Positions 26,772 to 45,116 of a DNA stretch of 64,000 nt are shown one piece after another; within the stretch, counting starts at the first letter, position 1; each line of letters opens with the position of its first letter. The notes below the pieces were generated by a model. It was not told the DNA's origin, made no database searches, and saw nothing but the letters and a program-made list of their open reading frames with translations. The position numbers were made by a program, and so were the translations under genes. The stretch lies in IMG/VR virus record IMGVR_UViG_3300048597_000634, positions 62,001 through 126,000 of that record. The stretch is one strand, 5' to 3'.

Positions 26772-29700
26772 ATGGCCGGGACTTTTGGGTATACCAGCGT
26801 CAATAATGACCACCAACTGAAGTTTAATGTGCCTGATCGGTTTAGTGCTAGTAGAACCGGTCAAGTACGCCCTGAGTCTGGCTCTAACCCCTACGTTGTA
26901 TATAGTGAGACCCACACAGTCTTTAATTTAGAGCAGTCCTTATCTAGATTTAAGCGAGGCACTGTAGAGACGGATAACTTTCTAGTTACTGCGCCCCCCG
27001 ATAGTTTCTTAGGGTGGGCTTTGGGTAAAACAGAAAGTCAAGTGTTGGCTAAACAGGGTGTTACTAGGGTTCAACAGAGTGAGTTCTCTTTTGGGGCTAA
27101 CAAGAGTAAAATACATGTCCCTGCTGAGACTCAGGGCATAGGCAGGCTTAGATCCTTTCTAGAACGAGTCAATCTTAATGGTGAGCCCCCTTTAGTTTCT
27201 GGCGCAGGTGTAGACCCTAACGTCCCTAAAGAGATTGAACAAAAACTAGCTCACTTTAAGATCACTACTGGAGATATAGATGCTGCTGCTCTAGGTCAAT
27301 ATGAAGGTATAACAGATGGTAACAATAGCCCAGTAGAAGCACCGACTAAAGTGGCAGTCCAAACTACTGCCATGTACGGCAACTATCAATTCCATGGCAC
27401 TTGGGGTATTGTTGGTGGCGCCCTATCGTTTAAACGTGATAGCTCAGGCATAACTGACTTAGGGCGTGGGGCCTACACTCAAGGCTATATGGACACTTCT
27501 ATCCACATAGAAGACCCTAGATATTTACGAATGGTCGATGACTGGAGTAAGGATAAATACGCCACTAGAGGAGTATTTAGAAGTGAAGACTATTCAAAAG
27601 AAGGTCAAGAGAAGTTAGAAGGCGTAAAGCTACTTCGTAACGTATCTATACATGAGGAAGCTATACGAGAAACAGCCGCTTATATTGAGGCGTTAAGTCC
27701 TCGCTCAGCCACTGCAGAACGGTTATCTGAAGGTAAGCAGATAACCAACAAAGATTTAGAGAATATCCGTAAAGAGTATGCAGAAGACTTAGAGGTTATT
27801 CAGTCTGATATGCAGGCGGCTGGCGCCATGTATTACATGAGTGGTCCGGCTATGGGTTACAACGAGACTAACTTGTCTGATAACACTGTAGCTGGCATAC
27901 GACGTCAACAAGTAAAGCAAACCCTAGACCAAATAGAGACTCTAAAGCAGCTGGGTATTAAGCCGGTCATTCATACAGATATTAACCGGATGGATATAGA
28001 TACTGGGTCTAAGCGCCGTCTGTTAGAAGAAGCCTATGTGGTTCAAACTCATACCTTTTTTGGGATGAGTCAACAGCAGGCCCACCACAACGTATCAGGG
28101 TTAGTAATCCCTAACCTGGACATAGACTCTCAGGCTGGTAGTAGGCTCAAAGAAGCAGGTTTAGCGTCGGAAAGCGGTCTGGCAGGATTTATAAGTTTGG
28201 GTACCGCCCGTTTGATTGGCTCCTTTGCCTATGAGATGGGTATCCAAGTAGATCTTGACGCTGCGCCAGACTCCTATGTTGACGCTATTATGGGGTCTAT
28301 TGGTCGGACATTAAACGTGGGGGCAGTATATCGTCAGCGTAAAGACGCTGCTTACCAAGGTCCCAGCGGCGCTGACTTATCATCTTTTTATAAACCCACG
28401 TATAGAGACGTAAGGAGCGGCAACTTCCAGGAGATTGGGTTACTACCAGTCATGCCTAATGAGATGCCCGACGATTTCTTTGAATACTACGGCGGGCTAT
28501 CCACCCGTATCTACTCCGATAGATACCAAGCTTTATACGGCACTAAAGCCACAGGAATGCAAGGTCACGTCTTAGAACGATTAGACGCCAAGCTAAGCGC
28601 GCCCGGCTTTGGTATGGGGCTCAACCAACTATTCCGACAAGACGATTTATACACCCCAGGACAGGGTTTAGCCGGCTTCCTAGCTACTAGTATTGGTAGG
28701 GTATTCGATACTGTTAGCGGGCATTATACGATGCAACGCATTAAGAAACAGCACGACGGGGATTTGTCCGGCTCTTTAGGGGAATACCAACAGAAGATTA
28801 TTGAGCAGGAACACTTCAGGGCTATAGAGCAGCGGGGCTTCTTTGAGAACTTATTCAATACCTTGACGACTACTATTGCCGATACGTCGCTGTCTATGGC
28901 TAGTTACTTTGGGGTTACTCACGCCTATAGTATTGCCAAAGCACAAATCGAAGACGCCGGTTCCAAACATATCCTTGATGTCGTTACTGGAGCAGTGGGC
29001 GAAGGTAAGGCACATACTAGTATCTTGATGTTAACTGGGGGGCACTCCAAGTTGTTTGAGGAGGCTAATCAGTTACATGAGTTGATGGACAAAGTCGGAG
29101 GCTTCGATAGCATTAAGTCTGCTTCATCACTTGGTGATTATCTGTTAGCCGTACAAGACTTCACTTCTGGGCAAGATGTAACTATAGCTGAGGGCGCTAC
29201 TGATAGCGTTTTTGGGTGGTATAAGAAAAAGAAAGATGTTGAAGGATTTATGCGGACTCCTACAGGCCCAGGCGCTGCACCAGTGTCAGCTTTAGGAGAG
29301 CAACAGCTGTTCGACTTTCTAGACGATATTTATAATGTAAAGCCCGGCTTGGACGATGACTTAGCCAGTCTAGTTAAAAAGAAATTAGGGCAGGCTAATA
29401 CAAATAGTATTGACCCAGCTGCCTTAAGGAAAGCTTACGCTAAAGCATTAGAGGAGATGGGTATAACTATAAACTTGCCTACTTCAGGTAACGCTCATGT
29501 AAGCGGCAGCGTTGAGTTAGCTAGGTCACTGGATAATGCTAATTCTGGTGCGATTCACATGCCAGATGCCGTTGGCTTTAGGAACATTAGGGCGGTACGC
29601 CGGCTAGACTCAGCCAATCTAACTAATATGTTCCTGCCGTTCTTAGATAACGCGGTAGACCTATCAACAGAGGCTAGTAAGGAAGGATATCTAAAGGCTC

Positions 29701-32700: not shown

Positions 32701-35700
32701 TGCAGTCTCAGTCGGTGGCTGCTGACGTTAGTGGATCATTTTACTTAATGCCTGCTATGGCATCTGAGTTTAATAACGCTAAGTCCTTAGGTCCCCTATT
32801 AGCCGCCGCCCAGCGTAACCCTAACCTGACTGACTCTAGGGCAGTAGCCCTATACCGAGCCACGTTGATGCGTAAGTCCAGGGCTACGTATAAGAACAAT
32901 ATTAGTGCAGGTGAGTCTGCGGCTATTTCTAGCCCTACATTACAGATTGCCATTGGGCGCCGCTCAGATGAAGTAAGACGTCTTGCTTGGCAAACCGGCG
33001 AGGGTCATATGTTAGACCTGTTGACCACTATGGCTGCCGCAGGTCGGATTAAAACAGAGGCCACTACCAACTTTATTAGTAATGCCGGCGCTACTATATA
33101 TGACTTTGTGGGTAATAACTTCAGAATCCAACCTACTAACATCGCTGGTAATCCTGTTAGGTTTAGTATCCAGACTAATGCTGAGTTCGCCCGGGCTATG
33201 TGGACTATGGCTAAGGGCAGCAATACTCAGACTGACATCAACACGATGTTATATGACTCTGAGCGGGTACAAGACGCTGGGCCCAATCCTGTTACAGGGT
33301 ACTTCGGCAATATCATGAGTTACGCCTTTGGTACCTTTTATGACCGTACCTTAGATGAGTATGGCCCGAGCTTCCACAATATATTGCCCGCCGCCGCCCT
33401 AGCATTTAGTGCAGTGGGCTTAAGCGCCATGTTGACCGGTACGGCGATAACTTCGGTTGTACAGGGTATTGGGGCGCTAGGTGCCTTACAGGTGTATGGA
33501 ACGCTGGCCGACTCTGCTCGTAACTTAGACCAAGCGAGACAGAACGTCACTCATGTTATACAAAGCACTTCCTATGGCATCGGGCGCGATAACAAATTAA
33601 TGAAGCAAGTTGGCTCAGTGATGTCTGAGATGGATATGACCGGGGGCGTAACCGAGGAAGCCATTACTGCCTTAAATAGTGTTTTTGGTAAACGCAACCA
33701 AGTTGGTAGTTTAGGTAAGTTCAGTAACTCCCTAGCGGGTAAGGCCAGCCAACTAGCCTCTATGTCTGCTAGTAATACTAACGATATAACGGAGGTACTG
33801 CGGCAGATTAAAGCGGACTTCAACGATAGCGTTGAGGGTCTTCAGAAAGGCTTCAACATGTCAAACGACGCTTTCAAAGAGATGTTAGAGGGCATATTTG
33901 ATGCGACTGATAGCACTTTAGTAGCCGGCATCAATAATATTCTTCGCAACATGCCTCTGGAAGAAACCCGCCGACAAGAGATAGAAATCCTATTGTTGCA
34001 GCATATGCAGAATAATATGGACCCCTTGCGTAATACGTCGGGGTTTAAGCTGACTGATGCCGCCCCTAGCGATAAGTCTCGTATTGTTTATAACTCTCTA
34101 TCTGACAAAAAAACCATGAGCGCTAGCTCTGCGTTTATCAATACAGTATTAGACCAAGAAGGGTACTCTGGACTATTTAAACGGTCTACGGGAGGGCTAT
34201 TCCGGGCATCTTTTGCCATGTTTGATATGAAAGCTGCTTATGAGTTTGCCAGCTTTGCGGCGGCTTCCTCTGACCCTATGGATGAATTAGAACGCCGTCG
34301 GTCCTCTTATGCTGCCGCTGCCAGTCTATTCCAAACATTCGGGATGATTATCCCAGGTCAGGTAGTATTAGGCACCTTAGCTAAGAACCCGACCTTAGCT
34401 GTAGCAGCTATGGTCGCTGCGGTAGGTATTGGTAGTGTTGCCTATGCCAACAAGGGTTTTCGTAAAAAGGTCAGTAACTTCTTCAAGCCGAAGTTTAAGT
34501 GGGCAGACCGTAACATAATTAAGCCTACTATTAGGTCTATTGCCAGTGCTTTAGACGCAGTGGGAAGTATTGGCGCTGTCCAAACTATGCTATCTCCAGT
34601 ACGGGTTATTACCTCAGGCTTAGATCCTATGTTTACGAATATGCGGCGTAGGGCGGCGCGCATACCTGGGGTTAACTTCATAGCTGACATGTTCATCCCT
34701 GAGACCAAAGAATCGTTCTACGACCGGTGGTCTGAGCAGACACCCACTATGACCGCCTATGGTCCCCGCATGGAGTTATACACCCGTGCAGAGATAGAAC
34801 AAGACCGTAAGAATAGGATTGAATCTCGGCGACGCCGGGGCGGTCAATTAAACGCTGGCATTAGTGTTGAGTTAATGTCTGGATTCCTACAAGGTAGACC
34901 TGATTCTACTGAATTAGGTCGTATGAGGTTAGAGCGTTTAACCAAGGGCGCTGGGCGGGTAGCCAGTGAGCACATAGGGTATAGCTATGTAAGCCCCCTA
35001 ATTCATTTAGCGGTTAAGCGGCGTCAACAAGAGATAGACTCCTATGGCAATGCTCTACTTGGCCCGTTGGTTCCTGAGACTAGGGGGTCGGCGGCGCCCA
35101 TATTGTCTTTGTCAACTAGTGTTATGCGTTATAGCTTGCACAGCACTGGCAGTTTAATTCAAGCGCCTATGGATGTGGCAGGTAAGGGGGCGGCCATAAC
35201 CATAAAGTCTTTTGCTTGGCTGAATGACGCCTTTACTAAGGTGAAAGACAGTAAGTTAGTATTTGGTCTTATTGGGGGTGCTAAGGCAGCTCCTAATAAC
35301 CAAATGTTTACCTGGGCTGCCGCCGGCGTGATCGGCTCATCTATCTTGGCAGACCGTTTAGGTTGGACTCAAAAAGAAGATAAGAAATGGCAAACTGCCG
35401 GGCTGGTAATTGGGGCAGGCGCTACAGCGGCGGTGGCCAGACCCTATGCCGGCGCCGCCTTTAATATGCTAGCTGACCAAGATAACTTTGCCGGTAAGAA
35501 TATTCGTAAGCTACGTCGTATAAACATGAATGCCATTACTGACCTGGCGGTTAAGGTCGGTATGGGCGGTCTTAAATGGACTAAGGGGTTATTTAGTCAC
35601 GCATCACAGTGGGCAAGGACTCAATCATGGTCTCGCATAGCGGCTAATACCGGGTATAGTGGCGCTGCTATTGTCGGGGCAACAATGTTATTAAGCCCGG

Positions 35701-38700
35701 CGGTGGATGACTTTCTGGGTTGGGGTGAAGACCCTAAGAAAGAGAATGACCGTAAATTATTAGACCGTCGTAGGATGACGGCTATTGGAGTTACTGCAGG
35801 GGTGTCACTATTAGCTAGATTAGGAGCCACTTGGAAGCCTAACCTTGCAGGCTCAGCAGTTAACAAAGTAGGGGGCTCTGTCACACGATTAGCCACTTTT
35901 GGGGTTAGTACCTTAGCAGTGTTTAAGCTTAGTAAGGTAGTGATGGCTAATCAAATCACTGGGTTTGGATTTAACACTGCTTTTAACGTCGGCTATGGTT
36001 TGCTTAACTTAGAAGACGACGCACAAGGTCGGGCTAAAGCACAGGCCTATGAAGCTACCACGAGCACCATTGCTTTTGGTTTGACTGTGGGTTATGCATA
36101 TAACGTCTATGGTAAGGAATTAATAAATAAAGCTAGGGGTATAGCCCCGACGCATGTAGGCTGGGCTGCTTTCCGCCATAACGTTAAGTCTGGGCTTAAG
36201 AATATATTCACACCAGTTACCTTTGGAGCACCTTATTGGGGTCAGATAAGGGGTCTATTAGGGGGTGGTTGGAATGCGGTCTATAACTCGAATAATTTGG
36301 CTGGGCGGGCGCTAAGACCTACAGGTAGGTATTTAGGAATGGCTAAGGACATGCTGCCTAAACTACCCCCCGGTTGGAATGAGCCTGTTAATAAGTTCTT
36401 TGGTCGTAAGATTAATTGGTTAATCAACGCCCAGAATGCGGCTAACCCAACTAAGGCACAATACGCAGCCTTCGATGCTGAGCAGATAGGATTACGGGAA
36501 CCTGCCCGAAAATTAGCCATTAAGAAGTGGGGTACTGTAGCTAGCCATGCGGCGAAATTAACCCCATTGATTATGGATACGGCTACCATAGCCGCCGCCC
36601 ACCACCGATACACTAAAGTAGACCCTAAAGATCACCTTGGTAACTACAAGGAAGCCTACCGCGCATATTACCAGTCGTCGGCTATGACTGCGGTCAGTAG
36701 CGTGCTTAGTGCCATTAGTGGTGGTGATAAGAAAGTAGGTCTGGTTAGCACTTTGTTAACTACCACTCAAGTTAGTGATATTGCCGGACGTATGGCAGAA
36801 GAGTGGGCTACTAAAGACTTGTATTCAGGGCGGTTATTAACTGAACAACGTGCCGGTCAAGATAGTTACTTTAGTCCTGAGTCAGCTGCTGGCGTAGGAG
36901 CTTTAACGCTTAGTGCTGCAGCCACTGCGTCTTACTACAAAGTAGGGGTCTTTAAGTCAGCTCGTTGGGATAAGACCGCCAACTTTATGGCAACTCATGC
37001 TGGTCAAGTAGCCCAAACAGCCATTACTGCCTATAACTGGCAAGATACCTGGCGTGCTGGTCGGCAAAGATATAGTGGTACTAATCCTAACTACATTGCC
37101 GCACAGCGCAGTAGTGATTTGGGCAAAGGGGCATTATACGCGGCGGCTATGTTGTCCTTGGCGTCTAAGAATCCAAGTTCTGGAGGTAAGAATCTGGCGT
37201 TAAGGACTGCTGGGGTGGTAACCTTTACTGCTGCTGCTATGGCAATGGATAACACTGAGTCTTATTTTGCTAAGCAACATACCTTAGCTGTCCGAGAAGC
37301 AGGCATTAGGGATGTATATGTTAAGAACTTAATCCAACGGGAAGCCGCCGAATCTACCCTTGGTTATGGTGCTGCTGGGGCGGCTATAGCTGGTCTAACC
37401 GTAGCCTCGTTATTGGCTTTTAAAGGCAAAGGTACTCCTTTCTGGAGTAAGGCGTCTTATGCACTACTAAGTGCCGCTACTGGTGGTTCAGCGGCTAGTT
37501 TCTTCGGACATCAGTGGCAATTAAATAAGGGTATCCAGAAGTATAAGGATGGTATTACTCCTGAGCAATATTTAGAACGGCAGCGGTGGATAGACAATGG
37601 TGCGTATACCCCAGATAGTTGGCGCAACACTGACCAGAACCGAATGCAATGGTTGTTATGGAATACTGATTCGGTTAATGCCCGTAATCAGGTTCGCCGT
37701 GGGCGAACGGGTGCGGCTATAGGATTAGGTAACTTGAGTAGTAGCTATGTGACTCCTGATATGATAGCCGCCGCCCAAGATCGGGAGTTAAGAGCACGTT
37801 ATGGCCAGCCTATTACCTTTACCAGTACCGTTCAGTTTGTCGGTGGGGCTACTATACTTGCTGCTAATACTTTCCGATATGAGAAGGGTTTAGGCGCGGT
37901 AGGGGTTACATTTAGGCAACATATTAAGCCTACAGCCACTTTGTTTGATACGGTAGCGGGCTCTGCTAAAGATATGAGTCTTTGGCAGAAAGGTAAGTCT
38001 ATTGGTGGGTCTACACTAAACGCAGGATTCCAAGCATTACCCCTAATGTCGTATTACTTTGCTGCTCAAGGTGCTAAGGAGCAAATCACTAAGCATTCTG
38101 GACGTTATAGTTCTGGACGTATGACTACCGCCCAATACTTACAGGCTACTGCTTTGAGTAGAAGGGCGTATATGGCTCGTAGTGAGGCGCTATATGACGC
38201 CTATTTGCCGGGTTCGTCTAGTATAATGCGGTCGATTATAAGCGGCGTGGCTTTTGGTGCAGCCAAGGGTGCCTTATCAGGCGTCTTAGACTCCAAAGCC
38301 ATTGATGATGAGCGTCGGTGGATTGAGCGTAATAAAGAGGGGCTAAACCTTAGTAGTCTGAACCTAGCTAAAGCCAACCGTGCGTCCAGAAAATATCTAA
38401 CTGGTGGTAGTGGTACTGATAAGGTAGTCGGATTGGCTACCGGTGTAACCACTTTAAGTATCAACCTGTCAGCTGGTTTCATCACTGGTGGTCCTGTTGG
38501 TATATTCACTGGACTAATCACTAGTATTGTGCCAGGGTTACAGAACCAAGCCATCGCTAAGGCGAATATATCTAGACATAGGGCGCGCAATGTATTGCTA
38601 GAGAAAGGTAATGAAGTAGGGCATGAAGGGATATTAGACGACCTGAGTGGTATTGGAGCTGATGGTTATGGAATGATGGCGCTTAACATGGGGATTAGCT

Positions 38701-41700
38701 CGGGGGCGAGTTATTTAGTTAAGCGTATTCGTGAATACCATAAAACAAAGAAAGCCAAAGAAGCTTTAGAGAGTAAGCGACCTGGTGCTTCTCCTGATGT
38801 AATTAATAATACGTCAGATGATGGTGATGTTGGGCGCGGTGGCGGGACGGATGACGCTGGTGGCGACGGAGTCCTTAGCCCCAGACCCGGCGGGGGTGGG
38901 GACGGTGGTAGTGTAGGTCCTGCACCTACTTTGAAAGATGCTGATGATAGAGCGTCTACTAGAGCAGTTTTAGACACCAGTAATACTTCTATGTCTACTG
39001 AAGAAGTGAAGGCGGTCATGTCTAGAGGTAATGTTTCTGTAGAGCAGTATGAAGGTAAGTCTAAGTCTCTACAAGAGTACCATTCCGAGAAGATAGAAAT
39101 TTACGATAAGAAGATAAATGCGTTAAATACTGAGAGATCAGCGTTGTCAGCAGAAATAGACGGCTTAATTACAGAAAGGCTAAGGTTAGATGACGCGTAT
39201 CAAAACTCGTCGGTTACCGGCGGTAAAGAGGTGTATGAAGCTATAGAAGCGTCACATAATGCCTCATTGAAGCAGTTAGACGATAAGTTAAAGCAAGTCG
39301 ACCAGAGAATAGTAGAGATTGACCGTACAATAAACGCCCATAGTAAAGGGAGGGTCGCGTCTCAAACTATCATTAGTGAGTTGGGTACTGCGTATACTAT
39401 CAGGCACCAGCAGTTTAATATGCCAGCGCCCGCACCCGACCTGGTAATAACTCCACAACCTTCTCCGACAGTTGTCGGCCCCCAGCCTACCCTAGAGCCG
39501 CCTGTAAGCCGTGGCGGAACTACAGTAGCTCAACCTGTTATGCGTGGGCGGAATGCTATTGTCACTGATCTTGGTGACGGTACTGTGAGAAAGACATTAG
39601 TGCCTGACGGACCTAACCCACAGATAGCTAACAATATTCAAGTTGAGGCTGCGATACAACGTAAAATGGCCATCTTTGGCGTATCTCCAGACGTAAGGTC
39701 AGTTAACGTAGATTCTTTTGTCATGCGTAAAGTTACAGGGCACGCAGTAAGTCCTCTAACTGGAGAGGCTCTAACAGCTTCTAGACTAATAGCGGCTAGA
39801 AAGTTAGCTTTATTACATAGTCTGGGTGTTGTACACGGTGATGTACACTCTGGCAACATACTTACATCACCAGACGGCACTAAAGCTACGGTTTTAGATT
39901 ACGGTTACTCTAGATTAGCCAGTGTAGAAGAAGCTTACTCTATGCTGAGCGACAATGTAACCGTAGATAGACTCAAGAATAATGAATTTACGTCTAGGCC
40001 TATGGCTGACGGGTCACTGGGACCTCGTACAGTTGGGTCTGACCTGTCTGGGCTAATCAATATGTCTGGGTCTGACTCTGAGGAAGTATTGAAAGTATAT
40101 AAAAGTGAAATGGACCGTCACCGGCGTATGCCTGATAGTGACAATGTCTTTAAACTAAATGAGTTGGGACTACCTCCTGAAATAGAAGCCCAGGTCAAAT
40201 GGACAAACTCATCCGAGATAACCCTGAATAATGGTAACTTGGCATCTAGGGGTGCTGACATTGTTGAACCTATCATTGCACAACCCCAACAATCTACTCA
40301 GGCTAGTAGACCTATTACTAGTGCCCAAGAGATAATTAATAGATCGGGCGGTGGGTCTTCTGTGCCTACTACACCTCAACCCTCAATAGAATCTCATGTA
40401 AAGCTTGGTAGCGGGTCTACATCCTCGGCACCCAACCCAGTTATCTCCCAACCAGAACTCTTGGATACTGATAATAAAGTGGTCGGCGCCCCTGTAGAGC
40501 CTGACCAGATTGTAGCTAAGGGCGGTGCTAATATGGTGAGTCCAATGCCATCACAAAATCTTGGTACCACTACTAACCCCTTACCTAACGTATCCAACTA
40601 CGATAACAATGTAGTATCTAATCCTTTAGACCAGACACCTAGTGGTTTAAACAAGCAGCAGCCTGGCGGTTACATAAACCTAGGCTCAGACTCTATCAGA
40701 CCTAATGACCCAGTCACTATCATAAGTCGGTCTGGGCGCGGTCTCGTAGGTAATGCCATAGACTCCGTTAAAGAAGCAGATTGGCAAACCCGCGGCACCT
40801 ACGCTAGCAACACTGTTAGCGCTGGTATGGCTACCTTTAACCTCTACCGAGGTGTCACTACCTTAGCTAAGAAAAACACCACAGGCTTTGAAAAGTCCTA
40901 CGGGTTTGAATACTTAAGTCAATCTGGCGCTGGCTACGCTACTACTTACCTCACCATTAAAGGCGGGCTTAAAGCGACTAAGGCGCTGCCTTACCTAAAC
41001 TATGCTAGTGATGCTATCTCATTAGCTTATGGGAGTCATCGTCTTAATACAGCTACTACTGAAGCTGAATATATTAAAGCTAAGGGGGATGTAGGCGGCG
41101 CCATTGGTGGGTTGGCCGGTAATGTTGCTGGGCAGGGTATTGGTTGGCTGGTTGGCGGTGCTATTGGTGCAGGTATTGGTGCTGTCATCGGCTTCTTTGG
41201 TGGTTTTGGTATAGGTGCCGGTGTGGGTGCCGCCGCAGGATTTAAGATAGGCTCGTCTATAGGGTCTATAGTCGGTTCTATCGCTGGCTCTATGTACGGG
41301 GAGCAAGTAGGTAGAGACTGGGTCACTAAGAATAAGTATGGTGCCGGCGATGCCGTAGAAGTGTTCGACCTTACTGGTAAATATAAGAAGACTCAGGAGG
41401 ATAAGGAGCAGCGTAGAGCAGCGTCCATGGCTAGACACGATGGCGGACCTAAAGTGTCTTATGTCAAACCGAAGGCTACTACTGGTACTAAAGCTACTGC
41501 GGTTAAGAGAGTAACCAAACCCATGAGACCTGGGTCTAATACGTCAAAGAATGGGGGAACTCGGTCTGGTGTTGATGGGCCAACGAATAATATAGTGTCG
41601 TTTAACCCGCTTAGTAACGTACCTGGGTTGGACTTGTTCTTTCCTAAACCAGCGGCGGCTAGTGATGTTATACCCACAAGCGCAAAGGTTTATACGGAAC

Positions 41701-44700
41701 CTACCCTTCCTAAAGATATCAAGAATGTAGACGTTGATGTAACATCACGGTCTTTAGAATCTAAGACCCAGGAAGAAAAGGAAGAGATAGAAAATAAGCA
41801 GTGGTATGAAGGGCTCTTTGAAGGGCTGGCAGCAATGGGTCGGAATATGACCAATACCATCAACAAGGCAGCTGAGTATGTAGGTGATTTAATTGGCGAC
41901 GCCTGGAATTTTGTGACGGGTGGGGGCGCTGACGCTACCTTTGCCGATGGTAAGTTTAGCGGAAGTATGGCTCCGTTGTTTAACCTCATTCATAAATATG
42001 AGTCGCCTGGCGCCGGCTTTGATGCGTTAAATCCTTCTACAACGGGTACTGCTGTGTATGGTAAACCTCTAACTGAGACTACTATCGGAGAGATTATGGA
42101 TAGGTCTCCACGAGGTGGCGGACGCGCCAGTGGTATGTTTCAGTTTATGCCTTGGATTAATGGCAAAGAAGGGACGCTATATAGCGCCATGAAAGCTGCA
42201 GGTTATACCAGAGACACAGTCTTTACTGCCGAAGTACAGACTAATATGGCCATTAAATTTTTGCCTAAGCACAGACCTGAATTATGGGCGTATTTAACAG
42301 GTAAGTCTGACAATATCAACGCAGCTATGGATGACTTTGCTCGTGAGTGGGCTGCATTCCCTAACTCTAGAGATACAGGTGCTTATTCAGGACAACGTTC
42401 TGCTGGATTTGAAGAAACCAAGCAGGCATTAATAGAAACTCGTAAGTTAGTTATGGCTTCTGGCTCTGCGGAGGCAGGGTTTCAAACTGGAGCTGCTAGA
42501 GTAGGGGGCGTAGTTAAGACTAACGTGAAGACTATTCGTGATGGGGGTGGCACTCCTTATCACATTGATATGATGTTTGACCGAAGCACGTCATGGGAAC
42601 AAAGGGTTCAGGTTTTTGACCAACTAGCCGCTGGTTATGCTGCAATGGGTCGTCGCATTGAGTTTAGTAATAGTGCTGTTTCTGGTCTTGTATACCGAAC
42701 TAATCTTACCCAGAAGCAGAAAATCGACATGTTAAAGCGTGTAGAGTCTGCTCATAGTAATAGAAAAGGTGGTAGCGGTCGTGCCGCCATGGACTTTTTT
42801 GTCCCGCAAGAAGGTCATGCTAGATGGACAGGCGGACCAGCCACTAGCGGCTCAGGGGCTAACGTTGAGTATTTATTACCGGTCATTGAAGGTGGTTATT
42901 ATACTGTGGGTGCCAAAGGTCGTTCAGGTCAACATATTCAAGCTTTTGATGCTAGTGGTAAGAAGATATATGAGTTCTTTCACGGTGGTGGTGGTCAGCA
43001 AGGACGATTTAATTTTTCTGGTGCTGGTAGCGGCGGCTCTATGCCACAAGCAACACAACAAAATAGACCGCCCCATCCTCTCACTAGAGGTGAAAAGAAA
43101 GTTACTAGTGGCACTACCGGAAAAGGTCAATCAGGCAGTGTTACCCACTTTAAATATGAAGAATACACAGGCAAACGGGTAAGCGTTGGTAACAACCAAA
43201 CTATGGCAGAGCCCGCTGCCATCGCATTTAAGAAAATGCAAGAAGCCGCCGCTAAAGAAGGCGTAACGTTACAAGCTCGTAGTGGCTTCAGGTCAGTTAA
43301 AGAACAAGGAGAGGTCTTTAAACGAGGCCTAGATAGAAGAGAAGGCAATGTTTACGAAAATACTTTATATATTGCCCCTGCCGGATATTCAGAGCATGCC
43401 ACGGGTTACGCCATCGATATTACGGGTACTCTCAGTGAAGGTCTAACTGCTGCTGTAGCTGATACCGCCGCCGGCAAATGGTTGGCAGCTAACTCTGCCA
43501 AGTTCGGCTATCAAATGTCTTTCCCTAAAGGAAATGCCGACGGCGTCACTTATGAGCCTTGGCACTTTAGGTTTATGGGTGATTACTACGAAGGTAGTGA
43601 ACCTGATACGTCTACTGACGGAGTTTATGTACCCAGTGAGGGTGGTAGTATAACTCGACAACGACCCCAACGACGAAAAGTAACTTCCTGGGCTGAGCGG
43701 GAACGTCGTGCACAAGAACGCATTAAGTCTGGTCAGGTTAGGCGTGAAGTTAATATCGGAACACCAGCTAAAAATAATGGTGTACGTCAAGGCGGTGCCA
43801 AGGTACAGACTAAAGCTGAAGAGCTGCCCAAGAATATTCAGACTAATGATGTACCTGCCATGTCTAATGACCGTCGTGGTGTTAGTGGCTCTAGCGGGGG
43901 CTCGGGCGGAGGTGGTGGCGCCGGGGGCGGTAGTTCTGTAATAAGTGGACCCGTTTACACTCAGGGAGATTTAGGGTCTCCGGGAGCATTCCACTTTGAC
44001 ATCAAACGAGTCGAAGGCGGGTTTTATGAACGTGATTACCTAGACAATTATGTCCAAGTAAATGGTAAGCCTATAGGCACAGGTATTACAGTTAAGGGTG
44101 GAGAGTACGGAGCCCCTAGGTCTTACGGTGGTCATGGTGGCTGGGACTATGCCTTTGGGGATAAGAATGCCGGGCTTAGTCTTGTTAATGGTGCCCGCTT
44201 AATCAGCGTTACACCCACTAAGACCTATGGTGATAAGCTAATATTCCAGCTTCCTACTGGAGAACAGTTCGCTATTATCCATGGACGAGCTACTGCCTTG
44301 GGTAAAGATTCCGCTGGAGCGGAAGGAGCATATGCTCAAACTGATGGCTCGGTCAGTTTGGCTAGTGGCGGTGGGGGCCGTGGCGGTTACAGATATATGC
44401 AGCCGCCTCGTAGAAAAGTCACTTCCTGGGCTGAGCGAGAACGTCGGGCTCAGGAACGTATTAGATCTGGTCAAGTTGTAAGGCAGTCTTACGTTACTAA
44501 CCCAAGTAGAACCCGTAATAACCAAGTGAGACCCGGCGGCAACATTACCCAAAGCGGCGGCGGTTTTGGTTGGTTAAAGCTACCTTCCTTCTTTAGACCG
44601 CAATCTACTAACCAAGACAAAGTTTCAGCGATATATGAACCTGATGCTAAACGTAATGCTCGCCAGAAAGACTTACTCAAGACTATTCCTTCTAACCAGA

Positions 44701-45116
44701 AAGACTTAGACGTAGATGAAATCCTTGACACTAAGGTTACCCAGGCTTCAGATGAGGCTATGTCTAATGCAGAGATTATCGGTAATGTAATCGCTGAGGC
44801 GGCGGCCAAAGCCTATAAACAAAAACAAGAAGCCACCCCAGAAAAAGCCGTTCATCATATTACTAACGTCCAACGTCCGGCGGAGACTGCCCTTAACGTT
44901 AACAGCTACTCGCGGGCCATCACCAGTAACATTACCCGTGCTACTAAAACACAAACTGTTTATCAACCGGACAACGACCAAAATGTTATCTTGGTCAGCT
45001 CTCAAGTAGACCACACTATGGTAAATGTCAATGTGGCTAACAGTGGAATTAAATCGCCGTGCGGGTGGCAGATGGCGGGTAAGAAACAAAGAGTACAGGG
45101 ACCTTGTGTTGCCTAA
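26772..45116 (+). CDS. Giant (6114 aa) tape-measure-like/ejected polyprotein with PLD-like, kinase-like, muramidase, M15 and M23-like domains
   Basis: 18.3-kb uninterrupted ORF with a long Ala/Gly-rich amphipathic/hydrophobic core. Kinase motifs HGDVHSGN..DYG; lysozyme-like YES..ASGMFQF..AREWAAFP; VanY/M15B SGFRS..SEHATGYAID..YEPWH. Confidence 0.75.
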   Translation: MAGTFGYTSVNNDHQLKFNVPDRFSASRTGQVRPESGSNPYVVYSETHTVFNLEQSLSRFKRGTVETDNFLVTAPPDSFLGWALGKTESQVLAKQGVTRVQQSEFSFGANKSKIHVPAETQGIGRLRSFLERVNLNGEPPLVSGAGVDPNVPKEIEQKLAHFKITTGDIDAAALGQYEGITDGNNSPVEAPTKVAVQTTAMYGNYQFHGTWGIVGGALSFKRDSSGITDLGRGAYTQGYMDTSIHIEDPRYLRMVDDWSKDKYATRGVFRSEDYSKEGQEKLEGVKLLRNVSIHEEAIRETAAYIEALSPRSATAERLSEGKQITNKDLENIRKEYAEDLEVIQSDMQAAGAMYYMSGPAMGYNETNLSDNTVAGIRRQQVKQTLDQIETLKQLGIKPVIHTDINRMDIDTGSKRRLLEEAYVVQTHTFFGMSQQQAHHNVSGLVIPNLDIDSQAGSRLKEAGLASESGLAGFISLGTARLIGSFAYEMGIQVDLDAAPDSYVDAIMGSIGRTLNVGAVYRQRKDAAYQGPSGADLSSFYKPTYRDVRSGNFQEIGLLPVMPNEMPDDFFEYYGGLSTRIYSDRYQALYGTKATGMQGHVLERLDAKLSAPGFGMGLNQLFRQDDLYTPGQGLAGFLATSIGRVFDTVSGHYTMQRIKKQHDGDLSGSLGEYQQKIIEQEHFRAIEQRGFFENLFNTLTTTIADTSLSMASYFGVTHAYSIAKAQIEDAGSKHILDVVTGAVGEGKAHTSILMLTGGHSKLFEEANQLHELMDKVGGFDSIKSASSLGDYLLAVQDFTSGQDVTIAEGATDSVFGWYKKKKDVEGFMRTPTGPGAAPVSALGEQQLFDFLDDIYNVKPGLDDDLASLVKKKLGQANTNSIDPAALRKAYAKALEEMGITINLPTSGNAHVSGSVELARSLDNANSGAIHMPDAVGFRNIRAVRRLDSANLTNMFLPFLDNAVDLSTEASKEGYLKAREQLVDLARAKPVLTFDSSVQGEHTNKILHYGYDRLTDLARTFDDLAQYLPAYPLLWIKPIRDAFNRYELAQGKTKDDILGTRRSFRDLIGPGFTGLLSLQGEVSRTIGSIAQVGVGKYVTNTLEVFKLQGQASVLEAKIANSFKESYKFIAQVHGAANNVNFDDVLQAFIDRLQDPKKSGINQQDFEELAKLHSEISLKINKTPGLKYSTGHNELGAPGEDSYAGLRKFLFSAGAVLIADRIIDHFFIKPQGVDLGDSLMSHIFGTVSPEVEGREEDAKVLAGYSQNYSHTAPAIFKYPAATAGYAIGGLVFPSVYHQASHLKYWTSATKGKQFTSDQVELVTQVASGITQGLQGITPNATKEQLAEAFAKGSANAFAGSNKLRFGYAGAFVGASLALLATQAITSVVASTLEPLVALGDTAFRGRWHDPRKGLELDPIKGSAAAIFAKAHRQGAARAAALSQRAEARGGKAGDYMDYTSRGSMVVAWLLSSSMTVSAQQPGRLFYPFATQIAAPFYQFAMVGKLDPSSNQITMQSGLQLFPLSGVGFMVPSMFNPATKYTPSIAEQFLINQLTDLTPGMNQRALIGDDSDVEQRKEAYSLLKASSGILSLALGSGLNPTFDYRPVMFIGGLTALQSAEQVLGKSVGRLKPDSALYKELKNYETVYSIASMGLNVTDKLTRGAFSLSLTGVNYLTHSITAFLGRGELSLFKAGPAARKLMPFYLSAMLVAGMLRPGQTTTEHQSDHIGSLIENLTEGNTFGAVRLEQDHLTNYVLATAIGSAGFGGALTASGAFENVADWANEAGTGYIGLKKQEMYKTYLEHLGKIGVSVDDAADFRKQLMVSIKRGENVTTLLSQVNRQQLPLLQSGAARLGMASRVLAPILLGSFVAAQFLSLTDFYDHSNPVSYLLRGLTDTGRGAQMTYEQKAMLSNLGIKGARYQPKNVGEAVSNVGDYLLRSVFFMGNPSKSMGTYQDAPSPFLGLGGPFGVSGQQDMMKSYMQSQSVAADVSGSFYLMPAMASEFNNAKSLGPLLAAAQRNPNLTDSRAVALYRATLMRKSRATYKNNISAGESAAISSPTLQIAIGRRSDEVRRLAWQTGEGHMLDLLTTMAAAGRIKTEATTNFISNAGATIYDFVGNNFRIQPTNIAGNPVRFSIQTNAEFARAMWTMAKGSNTQTDINTMLYDSERVQDAGPNPVTGYFGNIMSYAFGTFYDRTLDEYGPSFHNILPAAALAFSAVGLSAMLTGTAITSVVQGIGALGALQVYGTLADSARNLDQARQNVTHVIQSTSYGIGRDNKLMKQVGSVMSEMDMTGGVTEEAITALNSVFGKRNQVGSLGKFSNSLAGKASQLASMSASNTNDITEVLRQIKADFNDSVEGLQKGFNMSNDAFKEMLEGIFDATDSTLVAGINNILRNMPLEETRRQEIEILLLQHMQNNMDPLRNTSGFKLTDAAPSDKSRIVYNSLSDKKTMSASSAFINTVLDQEGYSGLFKRSTGGLFRASFAMFDMKAAYEFASFAAASSDPMDELERRRSSYAAAASLFQTFGMIIPGQVVLGTLAKNPTLAVAAMVAAVGIGSVAYANKGFRKKVSNFFKPKFKWADRNIIKPTIRSIASALDAVGSIGAVQTMLSPVRVITSGLDPMFTNMRRRAARIPGVNFIADMFIPETKESFYDRWSEQTPTMTAYGPRMELYTRAEIEQDRKNRIESRRRRGGQLNAGISVELMSGFLQGRPDSTELGRMRLERLTKGAGRVASEHIGYSYVSPLIHLAVKRRQQEIDSYGNALLGPLVPETRGSAAPILSLSTSVMRYSLHSTGSLIQAPMDVAGKGAAITIKSFAWLNDAFTKVKDSKLVFGLIGGAKAAPNNQMFTWAAAGVIGSSILADRLGWTQKEDKKWQTAGLVIGAGATAAVARPYAGAAFNMLADQDNFAGKNIRKLRRINMNAITDLAVKVGMGGLKWTKGLFSHASQWARTQSWSRIAANTGYSGAAIVGATMLLSPAVDDFLGWGEDPKKENDRKLLDRRRMTAIGVTAGVSLLARLGATWKPNLAGSAVNKVGGSVTRLATFGVSTLAVFKLSKVVMANQITGFGFNTAFNVGYGLLNLEDDAQGRAKAQAYEATTSTIAFGLTVGYAYNVYGKELINKARGIAPTHVGWAAFRHNVKSGLKNIFTPVTFGAPYWGQIRGLLGGGWNAVYNSNNLAGRALRPTGRYLGMAKDMLPKLPPGWNEPVNKFFGRKINWLINAQNAANPTKAQYAAFDAEQIGLREPARKLAIKKWGTVASHAAKLTPLIMDTATIAAAHHRYTKVDPKDHLGNYKEAYRAYYQSSAMTAVSSVLSAISGGDKKVGLVSTLLTTTQVSDIAGRMAEEWATKDLYSGRLLTEQRAGQDSYFSPESAAGVGALTLSAAATASYYKVGVFKSARWDKTANFMATHAGQVAQTAITAYNWQDTWRAGRQRYSGTNPNYIAAQRSSDLGKGALYAAAMLSLASKNPSSGGKNLALRTAGVVTFTAAAMAMDNTESYFAKQHTLAVREAGIRDVYVKNLIQREAAESTLGYGAAGAAIAGLTVASLLAFKGKGTPFWSKASYALLSAATGGSAASFFGHQWQLNKGIQKYKDGITPEQYLERQRWIDNGAYTPDSWRNTDQNRMQWLLWNTDSVNARNQVRRGRTGAAIGLGNLSSSYVTPDMIAAAQDRELRARYGQPITFTSTVQFVGGATILAANTFRYEKGLGAVGVTFRQHIKPTATLFDTVAGSAKDMSLWQKGKSIGGSTLNAGFQALPLMSYYFAAQGAKEQITKHSGRYSSGRMTTAQYLQATALSRRAYMARSEALYDAYLPGSSSIMRSIISGVAFGAAKGALSGVLDSKAIDDERRWIERNKEGLNLSSLNLAKANRASRKYLTGGSGTDKVVGLATGVTTLSINLSAGFITGGPVGIFTGLITSIVPGLQNQAIAKANISRHRARNVLLEKGNEVGHEGILDDLSGIGADGYGMMALNMGISSGASYLVKRIREYHKTKKAKEALESKRPGASPDVINNTSDDGDVGRGGGTDDAGGDGVLSPRPGGGGDGGSVGPAPTLKDADDRASTRAVLDTSNTSMSTEEVKAVMSRGNVSVEQYEGKSKSLQEYHSEKIEIYDKKINALNTERSALSAEIDGLITERLRLDDAYQNSSVTGGKEVYEAIEASHNASLKQLDDKLKQVDQRIVEIDRTINAHSKGRVASQTIISELGTAYTIRHQQFNMPAPAPDLVITPQPSPTVVGPQPTLEPPVSRGGTTVAQPVMRGRNAIVTDLGDGTVRKTLVPDGPNPQIANNIQVEAAIQRKMAIFGVSPDVRSVNVDSFVMRKVTGHAVSPLTGEALTASRLIAARKLALLHSLGVVHGDVHSGNILTSPDGTKATVLDYGYSRLASVEEAYSMLSDNVTVDRLKNNEFTSRPMADGSLGPRTVGSDLSGLINMSGSDSEEVLKVYKSEMDRHRRMPDSDNVFKLNELGLPPEIEAQVKWTNSSEITLNNGNLASRGADIVEPIIAQPQQSTQASRPITSAQEIINRSGGGSSVPTTPQPSIESHVKLGSGSTSSAPNPVISQPELLDTDNKVVGAPVEPDQIVAKGGANMVSPMPSQNLGTTTNPLPNVSNYDNNVVSNPLDQTPSGLNKQQPGGYINLGSDSIRPNDPVTIISRSGRGLVGNAIDSVKEADWQTRGTYASNTVSAGMATFNLYRGVTTLAKKNTTGFEKSYGFEYLSQSGAGYATTYLTIKGGLKATKALPYLNYASDAISLAYGSHRLNTATTEAEYIKAKGDVGGAIGGLAGNVAGQGIGWLVGGAIGAGIGAVIGFFGGFGIGAGVGAAAGFKIGSSIGSIVGSIAGSMYGEQVGRDWVTKNKYGAGDAVEVFDLTGKYKKTQEDKEQRRAASMARHDGGPKVSYVKPKATTGTKATAVKRVTKPMRPGSNTSKNGGTRSGVDGPTNNIVSFNPLSNVPGLDLFFPKPAAASDVIPTSAKVYTEPTLPKDIKNVDVDVTSRSLESKTQEEKEEIENKQWYEGLFEGLAAMGRNMTNTINKAAEYVGDLIGDAWNFVTGGGADATFADGKFSGSMAPLFNLIHKYESPGAGFDALNPSTTGTAVYGKPLTETTIGEIMDRSPRGGGRASGMFQFMPWINGKEGTLYSAMKAAGYTRDTVFTAEVQTNMAIKFLPKHRPELWAYLTGKSDNINAAMDDFAREWAAFPNSRDTGAYSGQRSAGFEETKQALIETRKLVMASGSAEAGFQTGAARVGGVVKTNVKTIRDGGGTPYHIDMMFDRSTSWEQRVQVFDQLAAGYAAMGRRIEFSNSAVSGLVYRTNLTQKQKIDMLKRVESAHSNRKGGSGRAAMDFFVPQEGHARWTGGPATSGSGANVEYLLPVIEGGYYTVGAKGRSGQHIQAFDASGKKIYEFFHGGGGQQGRFNFSGAGSGGSMPQATQQNRPPHPLTRGEKKVTSGTTGKGQSGSVTHFKYEEYTGKRVSVGNNQTMAEPAAIAFKKMQEAAAKEGVTLQARSGFRSVKEQGEVFKRGLDRREGNVYENTLYIAPAGYSEHATGYAIDITGTLSEGLTAAVADTAAGKWLAANSAKFGYQMSFPKGNADGVTYEPWHFRFMGDYYEGSEPDTSTDGVYVPSEGGSITRQRPQRRKVTSWAERERRAQERIKSGQVRREVNIGTPAKNNGVRQGGAKVQTKAEELPKNIQTNDVPAMSNDRRGVSGSSGGSGGGGGAGGGSSVISGPVYTQGDLGSPGAFHFDIKRVEGGFYERDYLDNYVQVNGKPIGTGITVKGGEYGAPRSYGGHGGWDYAFGDKNAGLSLVNGARLISVTPTKTYGDKLIFQLPTGEQFAIIHGRATALGKDSAGAEGAYAQTDGSVSLASGGGGRGGYRYMQPPRRKVTSWAERERRAQERIRSGQVVRQSYVTNPSRTRNNQVRPGGNITQSGGGFGWLKLPSFFRPQSTNQDKVSAIYEPDAKRNARQKDLLKTIPSNQKDLDVDEILDTKVTQASDEAMSNAEIIGNVIAEAAAKAYKQKQEATPEKAVHHITNVQRPAETALNVNSYSRAITSNITRATKTQTVYQPDNDQNVILVSSQVDHTMVNVNVANSGIKSPCGWQMAGKKQRVQGPCVA
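43671..44477 (+). repeat. Internal duplication RRKVTSWAERERRAQERI.SGQV (69 bp x2)
   Basis: Copies at 43671-43739 and 44409-44477, differing mostly at synonymous sites. Confidence 0.9.

Follow-up and report, generated by a model that had tools for sequence, protein, structure and literature searches.

A minimal protein-kinase-like domain within a giant protein encoded beside the terminase gene of an uncultured cyanophage

Results

The giant gene and its neighbours

The window analysed here is a 64,000-nucleotide stretch (positions 62,001 to 126,000) of the IMG/VR virus record IMGVR_UViG_3300048597_000634. The carrier phage is an uncultured jumbo cyanophage, and its host is probably a cyanobacterium. 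The window contains a giant gene that is contiguous, and on the same strand, with sheath, baseplate, fibre and large terminase subunit (TerL) genes; the features discussed below are listed in Table 1. The order TerL, ORF of ~210 aa and giant ORF is conserved in Ma-LMM01 and in Microcoleus phage My-WqHQDG. The small ORF that separates the two larger genes has no Pfam match, and a weak similarity chain runs from its 206-aa counterpart in contig L006 (below) to a 253-aa ORF of My-WqHQDG and from there to Ma-LMM01 gp119. The core block of the giant protein matches the giant protein of My-WqHQDG in BLASTP searches with E-values of 8e-6 and 4e-5 and Ma-LMM01 gp120 with an E-value of 0.004, and the My-WqHQDG protein and gp120 match each other with E 3e-25. 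Since hhalign comparison of the core block with gp120, made with two sequences only, was weak (probability 1.9%), homology to gp120 rests on BLAST transitivity through My-WqHQDG and on synteny. Judged by these similarities and by gene order, the carrier is a member of a giant-protein family that is encoded directly after TerL in Ma-LMM01-like cyanomyoviruses and whose members are 2,898 aa (gp120), 4,151 aa (My-WqHQDG) and 6,114 aa (here) in length.

The first ~4,000 residues of the giant protein form a conserved body with several Ala/Gly-rich hydrophobic segments, and the last ~2,100 residues carry, in order, a coiled coil, the kinase domain, a long linker, a glycine-zipper segment, a lysozyme-like domain, an unknown domain, a VanY domain and a further domain that is bracketed by the two copies of an 18-aa motif. 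The first 4,000 residues matched no structural family in PHROG, Pfam or NCBIfam, a protein-language-model search with the first 1,300 residues gave no usable match (score 0.76), and no paralogy was found among the three giant ORFs of this genome. The glycine-zipper segment has hydropathy peaks at residues 4790–4822 and weak Gly-zipper Pfam matches, and residues 4701–4800 are 81% identical to those of the relative P0152 (below). The lysozyme-like domain has no Pfam or PDB sequence match; its tblastn matches are annotated as lysozyme, endolysin, an S-CAM7 baseplate gpD-like protein and an S-CBS2 structural protein. The S-CAM7 protein, of the baseplate hub, and the S-CBS2 protein, annotated as structural, are in line with a role in the virion or in entry. 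Two other candidate C-terminal enzymes, an SLT-type lytic transglycosylase and an M23 peptidase, were unsupported by PDB phmmer or Pfam searches; the second was dropped, and the segment assigned to the first was later found to be lysozyme-like by cyanophage tblastn.

Table 1. Features of the giant gene and its neighbourhood (positions in the window; residues are those of the giant protein)
Feature	Position	Strand	Basis and remarks
Large terminase subunit TerL	24299..26077	+	PHROG terminase matches; 35% identity to Ma-LMM01 terminase
209-aa ORF between TerL and giant gene, function unknown	26098..26727	+	84% identical to 206-aa ORF at matching L006 site
Giant ORF P0001, 6,114 aa, kinase carrier	26772..45116	+	Single open frame; collinear with P0152
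Core block (residues 1872–2084) common to Ma-LMM01-like giant proteins	32385..33023	+	BLASTP
Coiled-coil-like stretch (residues ~4085–4200), upstream of kinase	39024..39371	+	Weak coiled-coil-type Pfam matches only; missing from P0152
Pro-rich linker (residues 4201–4254)	39372..39533	+	From sequence; variable, gapped in P0152
Minimal protein-kinase-like domain (residues ~4255–4450)	39534..40121	+	Sequence, profile and fold evidence
Glycine-rich loop variant GRNAIV (4259–4264)	39546..39563	+	Aligns with GxGxxG/GAEA loops
Beta-3 lysine Lys4274, in VRK	39591..39593	+	K in 64/71 aligned kinases; kept in P0152
Helix-C glutamate Glu4292, in QVEAA	39645..39647	+	E in 61/71; kept in P0152
Catalytic loop HGDVHSGN (4355–4362), catalytic Asp4357, Asn4362	39834..39857	+	Alignment columns
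DYG (4376–4378), DFG-equivalent metal-binding motif	39897..39905	+	D 68/71, G 68/71; Asp4376 within VLDYG
Ser/Pro/Gln/Asn-rich linker (residues ~4470–4640)	40179..40691	+	From sequence; mostly absent from P0152
Gly/Ala-rich glycine-zipper hydrophobic segment (residues ~4775–4840)	41094..41291	+	Between kinase and cell-wall domains
Lysozyme-like domain (residues ~5062–5225)	41955..42446	+	tblastn to 70 phage records, 68 cyanophage
Domain of unknown function (residues ~5258–5404)	42543..42983	+	tblastn to S-WAM2 hypothetical protein, E 2e-12
VanY (M15) D-Ala-D-Ala carboxypeptidase domain (residues 5477–5603)	43200..43580	+	Pfam VanY E 2e-33; NCBIfam VanY, LdcB models
18-aa repeat RRKVTSWAERERRAQERI, first copy (5634–5651)	43671..43724	+	Exact repeat
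18-aa repeat RRKVTSWAERERRAQERI, second copy (5880–5897)	44409..44462	+	Exact repeat

The kinase-like domain

An earlier note on this DNA had claimed an apparently intact minimal kinase of the Bud32/RIO type at 39540–40130. This interval is in frame within the single uninterrupted 6,114-aa ORF (residues ~4257–4453), every motif that the note had named is found in the translation (in GRNAIV, VRK, QVEAA, LHSLGVVHGDVHSGNIL, VLDYG and LSDN), and the claim is borne out by profile and fold matches beyond chance and by a full set of catalytic residues. The catalytic set of the protein-kinase-like (PKL) superfamily is complete at conserved columns of a 71-sequence kinase alignment: G4259, K4274, E4292, H4355/D4357, N4362 and D4376. 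The loop glycine G4259 is common to 57 of the 71 sequences, and in the nucleotide loop of the domain other residues stand in place of the first and the third GxGxxG glycine. The LHSLGVVHGDVHSGNIL motif includes His4355 (70/71), Asp4357 (64/71) and Asn4362 (71/71); the position two after the catalytic Asp is His here, as in 29 of the aligned sequences, and is the Lys of Ser/Thr kinases in 32. The Hanks-type HRDLKPxN loop is absent, the loop being HGDVHSGN, and the query is gapped at the activation segment and APE motif when it is aligned with Hanks-type kinases. By its residues, the ~200-aa domain looks like a minimal kinase of the PKL superfamily, of the RIO/Bud32/APH type, with all catalytic residues present.

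Profile searches with the isolated domain gave a single Pfam family above its cut-off, APH (PF01636), at 24.3–24.5 bits against 23.2; within a long chunk of the protein it scored only 19.8 bits, and the match is limited to profile positions ~140–200 of 239. Weaker Pfam matches were to Pkinase, ABC1, RIO1 and Kdo, with Pkinase (PF00069) at 20.6–20.8 bits against a gathering threshold of 31.7, matching in the catalytic loop and DFG region only, and RIO1 (PF01163) at 16.9 bits against a gathering threshold of 22. The best NCBIfam match was Bud32 (TIGR03724, E 1.7e-8), at 34.2 bits against an equivalog cut-off of 125, and the sole PHROG match was phrog_2361, “serine-threonine kinase” (E 0.0012). 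A phmmer search of PDB returned 216 sequences with E < 1, and nearly all of the best 60 of these are kinases; an exhaustive search with the domain returned 159 distant kinase-like matches at E < 1e-3; and the protein-language-model neighbours were viral kinases, RIO1 and OspG. In alignment A1, which consists of the query domain and 31 chosen matches, 31 of the 32 sequences match Pfam Pkinase. Word-index protein searches with the kinase region, the domain alone and residues 1–4100 recovered only the giant protein itself. The nearest stand-alone kinases lie on contigs too short to show a gene context. A Kae1/TsaD partner (PF00814) gave no match in the 205.5-kb record, in a search where the control genomes all matched; a host TsaD is a possible partner.

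Single-sequence AlphaFold prediction of the domain was unusable (pLDDT 35), and the model built on the 71-sequence alignment was taken instead; its pLDDT is 87.6 and its pTM 0.83, and it leans to a kinase fold because its input alignment is made of kinases. A two-lobed kinase fold of the PKL superfamily is present in this predicted structure. Foldseek searches with the model gave at least 500 matches at E ≤ 1e-3, of which the best 50 are all kinases, with PRPK/Bud32, TkArkI and RIOK1 at the top. VIA-align Z-scores were 16.6 for Rio2 (over 172 residues), 15.8 for Rio1, 13.8 for Bud32, 13.6 for APH(2''), 12.6 for OspG and 11.8 for NleH, with a range of 12.4–13.6 for the APH enzymes listed; macrolide and MTR kinases, WaaP and the RNA kinase ArkI are other close structural neighbours. 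After the DYG motif the model has two short helices and then a long helix at domain positions 182–212, in a region that is conserved in P0152, and the C-lobe appears in the model to be reduced rather than absent. In BFVD there is a kinase-like match in an uncultured-phage protein that is annotated as a portal protein.

Conservation and modular gain

The sole close relative that we found is P0152, a giant-protein frame of 4,659 aa whose 3' end is open, on an independent IMG/VR contig (L006); it is collinear with the 6,114-aa ORF and ~65% identical to it overall. Its kinase domain is 48–52% identical and retains all motifs and catalytic residues, with HGDVHGRN as the catalytic loop and DFG in place of DYG. 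Between the two domains pN is 0.355 and pS 0.707, and on these values the kinase is under purifying selection across the two phages. A rough estimate of omega (dN/dS), made from two sequences only and with dS saturated, is 0.22 for the kinase and 0.05 for the rest of the protein, so that the kinase evolves faster, and no other folded part of the giant protein evolves as fast. Other searches added no relatives: the region had no DNA relatives among INPHARED phages by megablast, tblastn of the N-terminal 2,900 aa against phages had no match, scans of IMG/VR with the kinase domain and the N-terminus found nothing further, alignment-based rescans of IMG/VR returned the same single relative again, the kinase alignment scanned over metagenome contigs found no relatives, and the core block scanned over GTDB genomes had no match. 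A search of sequencing runs gave one holder only (share 0.08), with no RNA.

The low-complexity linkers that the earlier note had seen on both sides of the kinase are real, Pro-rich on one side and Ser/Pro/Gln-rich on the other, and are rich in indels relative to P0152: the alignment at residues 4040–4240 is mostly gaps, and 89 of the 100 columns for residues 4501–4600 are gaps in P0152. Its further suggestion of an inserted module, to be checked by presence or absence in homologues, held up as well, in that the domain lies between these linkers, is present in one close relative (P0152) and is not found in the distant orthologues. These orthologues, gp120 of Ma-LMM01 and a My-WqHQDG protein of 4,151 aa, are both annotated as hypothetical; they share the gene order and a collinear core block with the giant protein but have no kinase, and the kinase profile found nothing in the entire Ma-LMM01 and My-WqHQDG records; the My-WqHQDG protein carries a PLD domain (PLDc_2). 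Because the kinase is absent from these distant orthologues, it is a lineage-specific module, and the comparison of the family's sequences shows a modular gain.

Discussion

A proposed kinase module of a virion-carried protein

From its position in the tail/terminase block on the same strand, its cell-wall domains and its glycine zipper, we infer that the carrier is a virion protein. We found no proteomic or structural report in the literature of virion presence for any member of the giant family, including Ma-LMM01 gp120. The reading that we favour, with about even confidence, is that the domain is the kinase module of a virion-carried polyvalent giant protein that is released at infection and phosphorylates host or phage proteins. 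The giant protein would be packaged and then set free as the phage infects, its lysozyme-like and VanY domains would act in the periplasm, and the kinase would act on the cytoplasmic side, because it requires ATP, reached either if the glycine zipper takes the chain across the inner membrane or if the linkers are cleaved. Host (or phage) proteins would be phosphorylated no later than the onset of phage gene expression, most plausibly with the effect of damping host responses, as is known for the T7 kinase; by this analogy and by that with polyvalent proteins, delivery at injection and the disabling of host defence are plausible. Because the HGDVHSGN loop is of the APH/RIO/Bud32 kind and the structural neighbours include ATPases and RNA and small-molecule kinases, we only infer that the substrate is a protein.

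A more specific version is that the packed 6,114-aa protein threads through the tail, the C-terminal domains cut the wall, the zipper inserts in the inner membrane and the kinase reaches the cytoplasm before phage gene expression; we hold this to be improbable, and to our knowledge passage of a 650-kDa protein through a phage tail is unprecedented. In this version the periplasm is where the lysozyme-like and VanY domains would cut the thick wall of the cyanobacterium, and the kinase would phosphorylate its host targets, of defence or takeover, ahead of all phage gene expression. If true, this would make the domain the first kinase effector of any phage shown to be delivered by the virion, on the largest ejected phage protein known.

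Relation to known systems

Polyvalent phage proteins, which are injected with the DNA, have been described with kinase and peptidoglycan-targeting domains (PMC5512222). They are huge polypeptides with several enzymes whose modules vary between relatives, and their proposed role is the modification of host proteins upon entry (PMC5512222); the carrier here is likewise huge and variable in its modules, with several distinct effector domains (kinase, lysozyme-like and VanY) in one ORF. By its domain content the giant protein thus fits the polyvalent phage proteins, but with a different kinase. The published kinase clade of polyvalent proteins, which occurs in Verrucomicrobia-Chlamydia and Bacteroidetes (pro)phages, has lost its C-terminal subdomain entirely, and an insert separates its catalytic His from the Asp (PMC5512222); set against that description, H4355-G-D4357 is contiguous here, the model shows a reduced C-lobe, and a cyanobacterium is the probable host. 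The carrier is also far larger and belongs to a separate, gp120-like family. Pfam and PHROGs revealed neither a MuF nor a portal domain in it, the domains by which polyvalent proteins are usually anchored, and no other known packaging anchor was detected.

RIO kinases and Bud32/PRPK share with the domain a G-x-E/N-A-type nucleotide loop, an HGD...N loop and the lack of an activation segment, and they are its best structural neighbours, yet its profile scores fall far under the cut-offs of these families, which are ribosome- or tRNA-modification factors, whereas here the domain forms part of a giant phage protein. The APH family (PF01636) shares the catalytic loop HGDxHxxN, but a domain of 200 aa has no room for the helical substrate-binding subdomain of APH enzymes. 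The type III effector kinases OspG and NleH are similar in size (~170–200 aa), lack the activation segment and are delivered by an injection apparatus; they target eukaryotic ubiquitin and NF-kB pathways, and their likeness to the domain is at the level of fold only. The T7 gp0.7 kinase (T7K) broadly disarms many defence systems (PMC13645617). It is a phage kinase that acts on host proteins, and the analogy to it is functional only: it is a separate early gene product and not part of a virion protein, no sequence relationship to the domain was seen in database searches, and its DFG-like motif is described as divergent (PMC13645617), as against the canonical D-[YF]-G here.

Alternative explanations

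It is conceivable, if on the whole somewhat unlikely, that the domain is an active phosphotransferase or ATPase and not a protein kinase, with a sugar, lipid, antibiotic-like compound, signalling nucleotide or RNA as substrate, or that it is an ATP-driven switch like RIO/Bud32 that, for example, senses arrival in the cytoplasm and drives a conformational step of the giant protein. APH alone exceeds its Pfam cut-off, the catalytic loop is of the APH/RIO type, the activation segment and APE motif are absent, and the top neighbours (above) are Rio2, Rio1 and Bud32, which are mainly ATPases, together with APH(2''), macrolide and MTR kinases, WaaP and ArkI. Pkinase, however, is matched by nearly all of alignment A1, OspG and NleH are true protein kinases in spite of having no activation loop, and the small-molecule binding subdomain of APH- and choline-kinase-like enzymes is missing from the domain.

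We regard as unlikely that the giant protein is left unpackaged, in which case it would be made in the infected cell and anchored in the membrane by its hydrophobic segments, and its enzymes would act from within; at the middle or late stage the kinase would act on cytoplasmic targets, and lysis would be aided by the lysozyme-like and VanY domains. Endolysins are small soluble proteins, and hydrolases that end a huge chain without a signal peptide are the usual pattern of virion-associated lysins. The hydrolases at the end of this 6,114-aa chain have no signal peptide and resemble the latter, although the lysozyme-like domain has many relatives with an endolysin annotation. The absence of any PHROG, Pfam or NCBIfam structural-family match to the giant protein favours synthesis in the cell, as does the expression of the Ma-LMM01 terminase in the middle class in a phage with only five late genes, and the need for cytoplasmic ATP is met most simply if the protein is made in place. 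The location of the gene within the tail/packaging block on the same strand argues for packaging, and variable effector modules on a conserved body (a kinase here, PLD in My-WqHQDG) fit delivered polyvalent proteins.

That the giant protein is a tail tape measure with the kinase as an accessory domain seems very improbable. Tape measures such as TM4 Tmp can be very long and can have muralytic domains and hydrophobic or glycine-rich segments, and they follow a rule of ~0.15 nm of tail per residue. Applied to the 2,898-aa orthologue from the Ma-LMM01 group, that rule predicts a tail of ~430 nm, against the 260 nm reported for MaMV-DH01 of the same group, and the family spans 2,898 to 6,114 aa among related phages. 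The giant gene, moreover, follows TerL instead of lying between the tube/chaperone genes and the baseplate hub, and three ORFs of 537–611 aa fill the usual tape-measure site between sheath and baseplate. We give equally little credence to a pseudokinase or decaying relic retained only as a spacer, which the fast evolution of the domain (48% identity against ~65% overall) and the two replaced GxGxxG glycines might suggest, since all catalytic residues are retained in both phages at 50% divergence, pN is well under pS, and RIO and Bud32 show similar loop variants.

Significance

Known phage kinases such as T7K must first be expressed, and a ready-made kinase that enters with the DNA would precede the sensing of infection by host defences. 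Genome analysis of polyvalent proteins led to the proposal that a kinase is delivered with the DNA (PMC5512222), and we found no paper that tests the idea; this locus is an independent case, with a different kinase lineage and a different, very large carrier family. One phage with a member of this family, Ma-LMM01 of bloom-forming Microcystis, is in culture, so that packaging of the family is directly testable by virion proteomics. Since the carrier swaps enzyme modules, with a kinase in this phage and PLD in My-WqHQDG, the giant protein may be a platform for host-directed effectors in freshwater cyanophages.

A kinase domain within the giant protein

The kinase domain described in the earlier note lies in frame within a single open frame of 6,114 codons (window 26772-45116, + strand), and every motif named there was found in residues ~4255-4450 of its product (window 39534-40121). 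Among Pfam families, APH matched the isolated domain with 24.3-24.5 bits (curated cut-off 23.2), and Pkinase, ABC1, RIO1, PK_Tyr_Ser-Thr and Kdo ranked after it, all below their own cut-offs; the first-ranked NCBIfam model was the archaeal Bud32 domain (E 1.7e-8), far under its equivalog cut-off. A phmmer search of the PDB gave 216 sequences at E<1, with kinases making up nearly all of the 60 matches listed. Exhaustive search of 1.84 billion representatives found no close relative of the domain and 159 distant hits at E<1e-3; Pfam Pkinase was matched by 31 of the 32 sequences in the alignment of the domain with 31 chosen hits. In this alignment and in a second one of 71 sequences, conservation falls on the catalytic columns, at each of which the query has the standard residue. 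The nearest stand-alone minimal kinases in the exhaustive search are metagenomic proteins of ~200-280 aa (P0009, P0023, P0096, P0109, P0111, P0117 and P0126), in which an N-terminal Cys-rich motif, C-x2-G-x2-C-G-x2-C, precedes the kinase.

An AlphaFold model from the single sequence was poor (pLDDT 35), and the final model used the 71-sequence alignment; its pLDDT of 87.6 and pTM of 0.83 rest on an alignment of kinases, which biases the model towards a kinase fold. PRPK/Bud32, TkArkI and RIOK1 were among the top Foldseek matches in the PDB, and an aligner independent of Foldseek gave Z values of 16.6 for Rio2, 15.8 for Rio1, 14.1 for RIOK1, 13.8 for Bud32, 13.6 for both PknB and APH(2''), 12.6 for OspG and 11.8 for NleH1. 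Given these structural neighbours, "Bud32/RIO-like minimal kinase" is a fair description of the predicted fold. By their curated thresholds the domain falls outside the Bud32, RIO and Hanks-type kinases, its likeness to which is limited to the fold and active site; no Kae1/TsaD partner was found in the 205.5-kb phage record. The best matches among predicted viral structures were the cyanophage kinases of S-TIM5 and S-CBWM1. The model also matched, by kinase fold, BFVD entry A0A6J5S481 (uncultured Caudovirales phage, 1,201 aa, annotated as an HK97-type portal), a possible fusion of a kinase with a virion protein. We regard it as almost certain that the domain has a kinase fold with intact residues.

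Features of the giant protein, its neighbourhood and related giant genes (window nucleotides unless marked aa)
Feature	Position	Strand	Remarks
Catalytic residues	Gly4259 (nucleotide loop), Lys4274, Glu4292, His4355, Asp4357, Asn4362, Asp4376, Gly4378		From the 32- and 71-sequence alignments
Glycine-zipper hydrophobic segment	~4775-4840 aa		In well conserved region after kinase and long linker
Lysozyme-like domain	~5062-5225 aa		Hits in 70 phage records (68 cyanophage)
Domain shared with an S-WAM2 hypothetical protein	5258-5404 aa
VanY/M15 peptidase	5477-5603 aa		Clear match
Last C-terminal domain			Exact copies of an 18-residue motif on either side
Tail sheath	629-4225	+	Upstream of giant gene
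Baseplate wedge protein	15185-16279	+	Upstream of giant gene
Fibre-like protein	19718-21931	+	Upstream of giant gene
ORF with DUF285 repeats and weak PKD-like domain	21934-22965	+	Amid tail-fibre genes
Large terminase (TerL)	24299-26077	+	Upstream of giant gene
ORF with weak phage-integrase match	45113-46186	-	E 5e-4, below cut-off; 4-base overlap with giant gene stop codon, opposite strand
HNH_3 endonuclease ORF with RWP-RK-like segment	46319-46948	-	Adjoins integrase-like ORF
Ribonucleotide reductase large subunit	49386-51758		Adjoins small subunit
Ribonucleotide reductase small subunit	51703-54165	-	Split by intein splicing domain; 820 aa total
Ma-LMM01 giant, gp120			2,898 aa; gp119 (211 aa) after TerL
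My-WqHQDG giant			4,151 aa; two small ORFs after TerL
Close relative's giant			4,659 aa, ended by contig end; 206-aa ORF after TerL

Conservation of the domain in a close relative

Across all collections searched, the giant protein had a single close relative, encoded in IMGVR_UViG_3300048597_000118, whose giant gene ends at the contig end after 4,659 codons. Both proteins align collinearly, and most window identities across the first 4,000 residues lie at ~45-90%. The relative's kinase is in the same place, is 48-52% identical and retains all catalytic residues, with the loop HGDVHGRN and the metal-binding motif DFG. Comparison of the two kinase sequences by the Nei-Gojobori method gave pN 0.355 and pS 0.707, an omega of ~0.2 against ~0.05 for the N-terminal body, values that are only rough because synonymous sites are saturated. 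The low-complexity flanks that the earlier note saw around the domain are real: the alignment to the relative falls into long gaps on both sides, and the coiled-coil and Pro-rich stretch 4040-4254 and the Ser/Pro/Gln-rich stretch 4470-4640 are largely absent from the relative. The kinase is a conserved yet mobile module.

The carrier family and its gene neighbourhood

The order TerL, small ORF(s), giant ORF is common to this record and three others. Homology is clear between Ma-LMM01 gp120 and the giant of My-WqHQDG (four collinear blocks, best E 3e-25), and the same block of the latter matches residues 1872-2084 of the present protein (E 8e-6 and 4e-5), to which gp120 has a weak match (E 0.004); profile comparison, with profiles built from two sequences only, gained little. 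On this synteny and transitive similarity we take the four giants to be one diverged family. A survey of these homologues found the kinase in the close relative and in neither gp120 nor the My-WqHQDG giant: a tblastn search with the domain across all phage records gave no match in Ma-LMM01 or My-WqHQDG, Pfam found no kinase in their giants, and a profile made from both kinase domains had no match in either complete record. The My-WqHQDG giant (L005:22995-35450, OR578706.1) carries instead a PLD-like domain (PLDc_2, residues 1043-1176, E 1e-9), and so the family would seem to consist of a conserved body able to take up various enzyme modules, which suggests swapping of such modules within it.

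In the present protein the first ~4,000 residues match no Pfam, PHROG or NCBIfam family and include about six moderately hydrophobic Ala/Gly-rich segments. Annotations of the lysozyme-like domain's relatives vary between lysozyme and endolysin; among these relatives are a gpD-like protein in the S-CAM7 baseplate-hub block and an annotated S-CBS2 structural protein. The 18-residue repeat RRKVTSWAERERRAQERI (exact copies at window 43671-43724 and 44409-44462) could serve in docking or processing; the guess of an M23 peptidase in the C-terminal part found no support.

The closest terminases to TerL come from the Ma-LMM01 group of Microcystis phages (35% identity) and from Microcoleus phage My-WqHQDG (30%). 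Cyanophages account for almost all of the best tblastn hits of the kinase and lysozyme-like domains. On both counts, a jumbo cyanomyovirus is the most likely identity of the phage. The source record (205,544 bp, CheckV completeness 91%) is classed as a provirus by IMG/VR, a label on which the integrase-like and HNH_3 ORFs may bear. At 1,198 aa the homologue of the tail sheath is unusually long, with the sheath-like match confined to residues ~720-1180, and the DUF285/PKD-like ORF may be a receptor-binding accessory. Outside the window lie two further giant ORFs (loci L007 and L008), one of 3,186 aa that ends in an AAA_30/PIF1-like helicase (G000:C1:13169-22729, - strand) and one of 5,274 aa with no Pfam hit (G000:C1:35305-51129, - strand). 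The record's three giant ORFs make up ~21% of the genome, and comparison with one another showed no paralogy.

Possible role of the giant protein

The kinase-fold module is intact and under selection, cell-wall hydrolase domains share its chain with a hydrophobic segment between, the giant gene lies within a tail/packaging gene block, and modules turn over between relatives. These features could reflect a polyvalent protein carried in the particle and released during infection, and we slightly favour its being packaged. The protein could instead stay out of the virion and act from within the infected cell, a reading that stands because neither a structural family match nor a proteomic record in the literature backs packaging. 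Nor need the domain be a protein kinase: its loop, HGDxHxxN, its APH score and those of its structural neighbours that are ATPases, small-molecule kinases or an RNA kinase would also fit another activity. We put the chances of a protein substrate as even; real phosphotransfer or ATPase activity seems probable. A tail tape measure is unlikely in view of the gene position and the family's size range, and a pseudokinase is unlikely because the catalytic residues are conserved.

Kinase domains have already been described in polyvalent phage proteins (Iyer et al. (2017), PMC5512222), so the concept is not new. The clade reported there, from Verrucomicrobia-Chlamydia and Bacteroidetes (pro)phages, has lost the C-terminal subdomain and carries an insertion that separates the catalytic His from the Asp (PMC5512222). 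By that description the present domain differs, in a comparison that covers two sequences and a predicted structure: H-G-D runs without interruption, and the model shows a reduced C-lobe, a region conserved in the relative. This points to a separate event in which another kind of minimal kinase was recruited to another carrier.

Peptidoglycan hydrolases have their site of action outside the inner membrane, and the ATP that kinases need occurs only on its inner side, so these two types of module would be expected to function in separate compartments. A particle-borne chain would then either span the membrane at the glycine zipper or be cut at the linkers, and the kinase would modify cytoplasmic targets very early. 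The full proposal of the earlier note, delivery at injection to disable host defence, is in our view doubtful. By analogy, the proposed mechanism would follow the delivery scheme of polyvalent proteins, for which kinase and peptidoglycan-targeting domains have been reported (PMC5512222), and would fit the anti-defence role demonstrated for the T7 kinase (PMC13645617).
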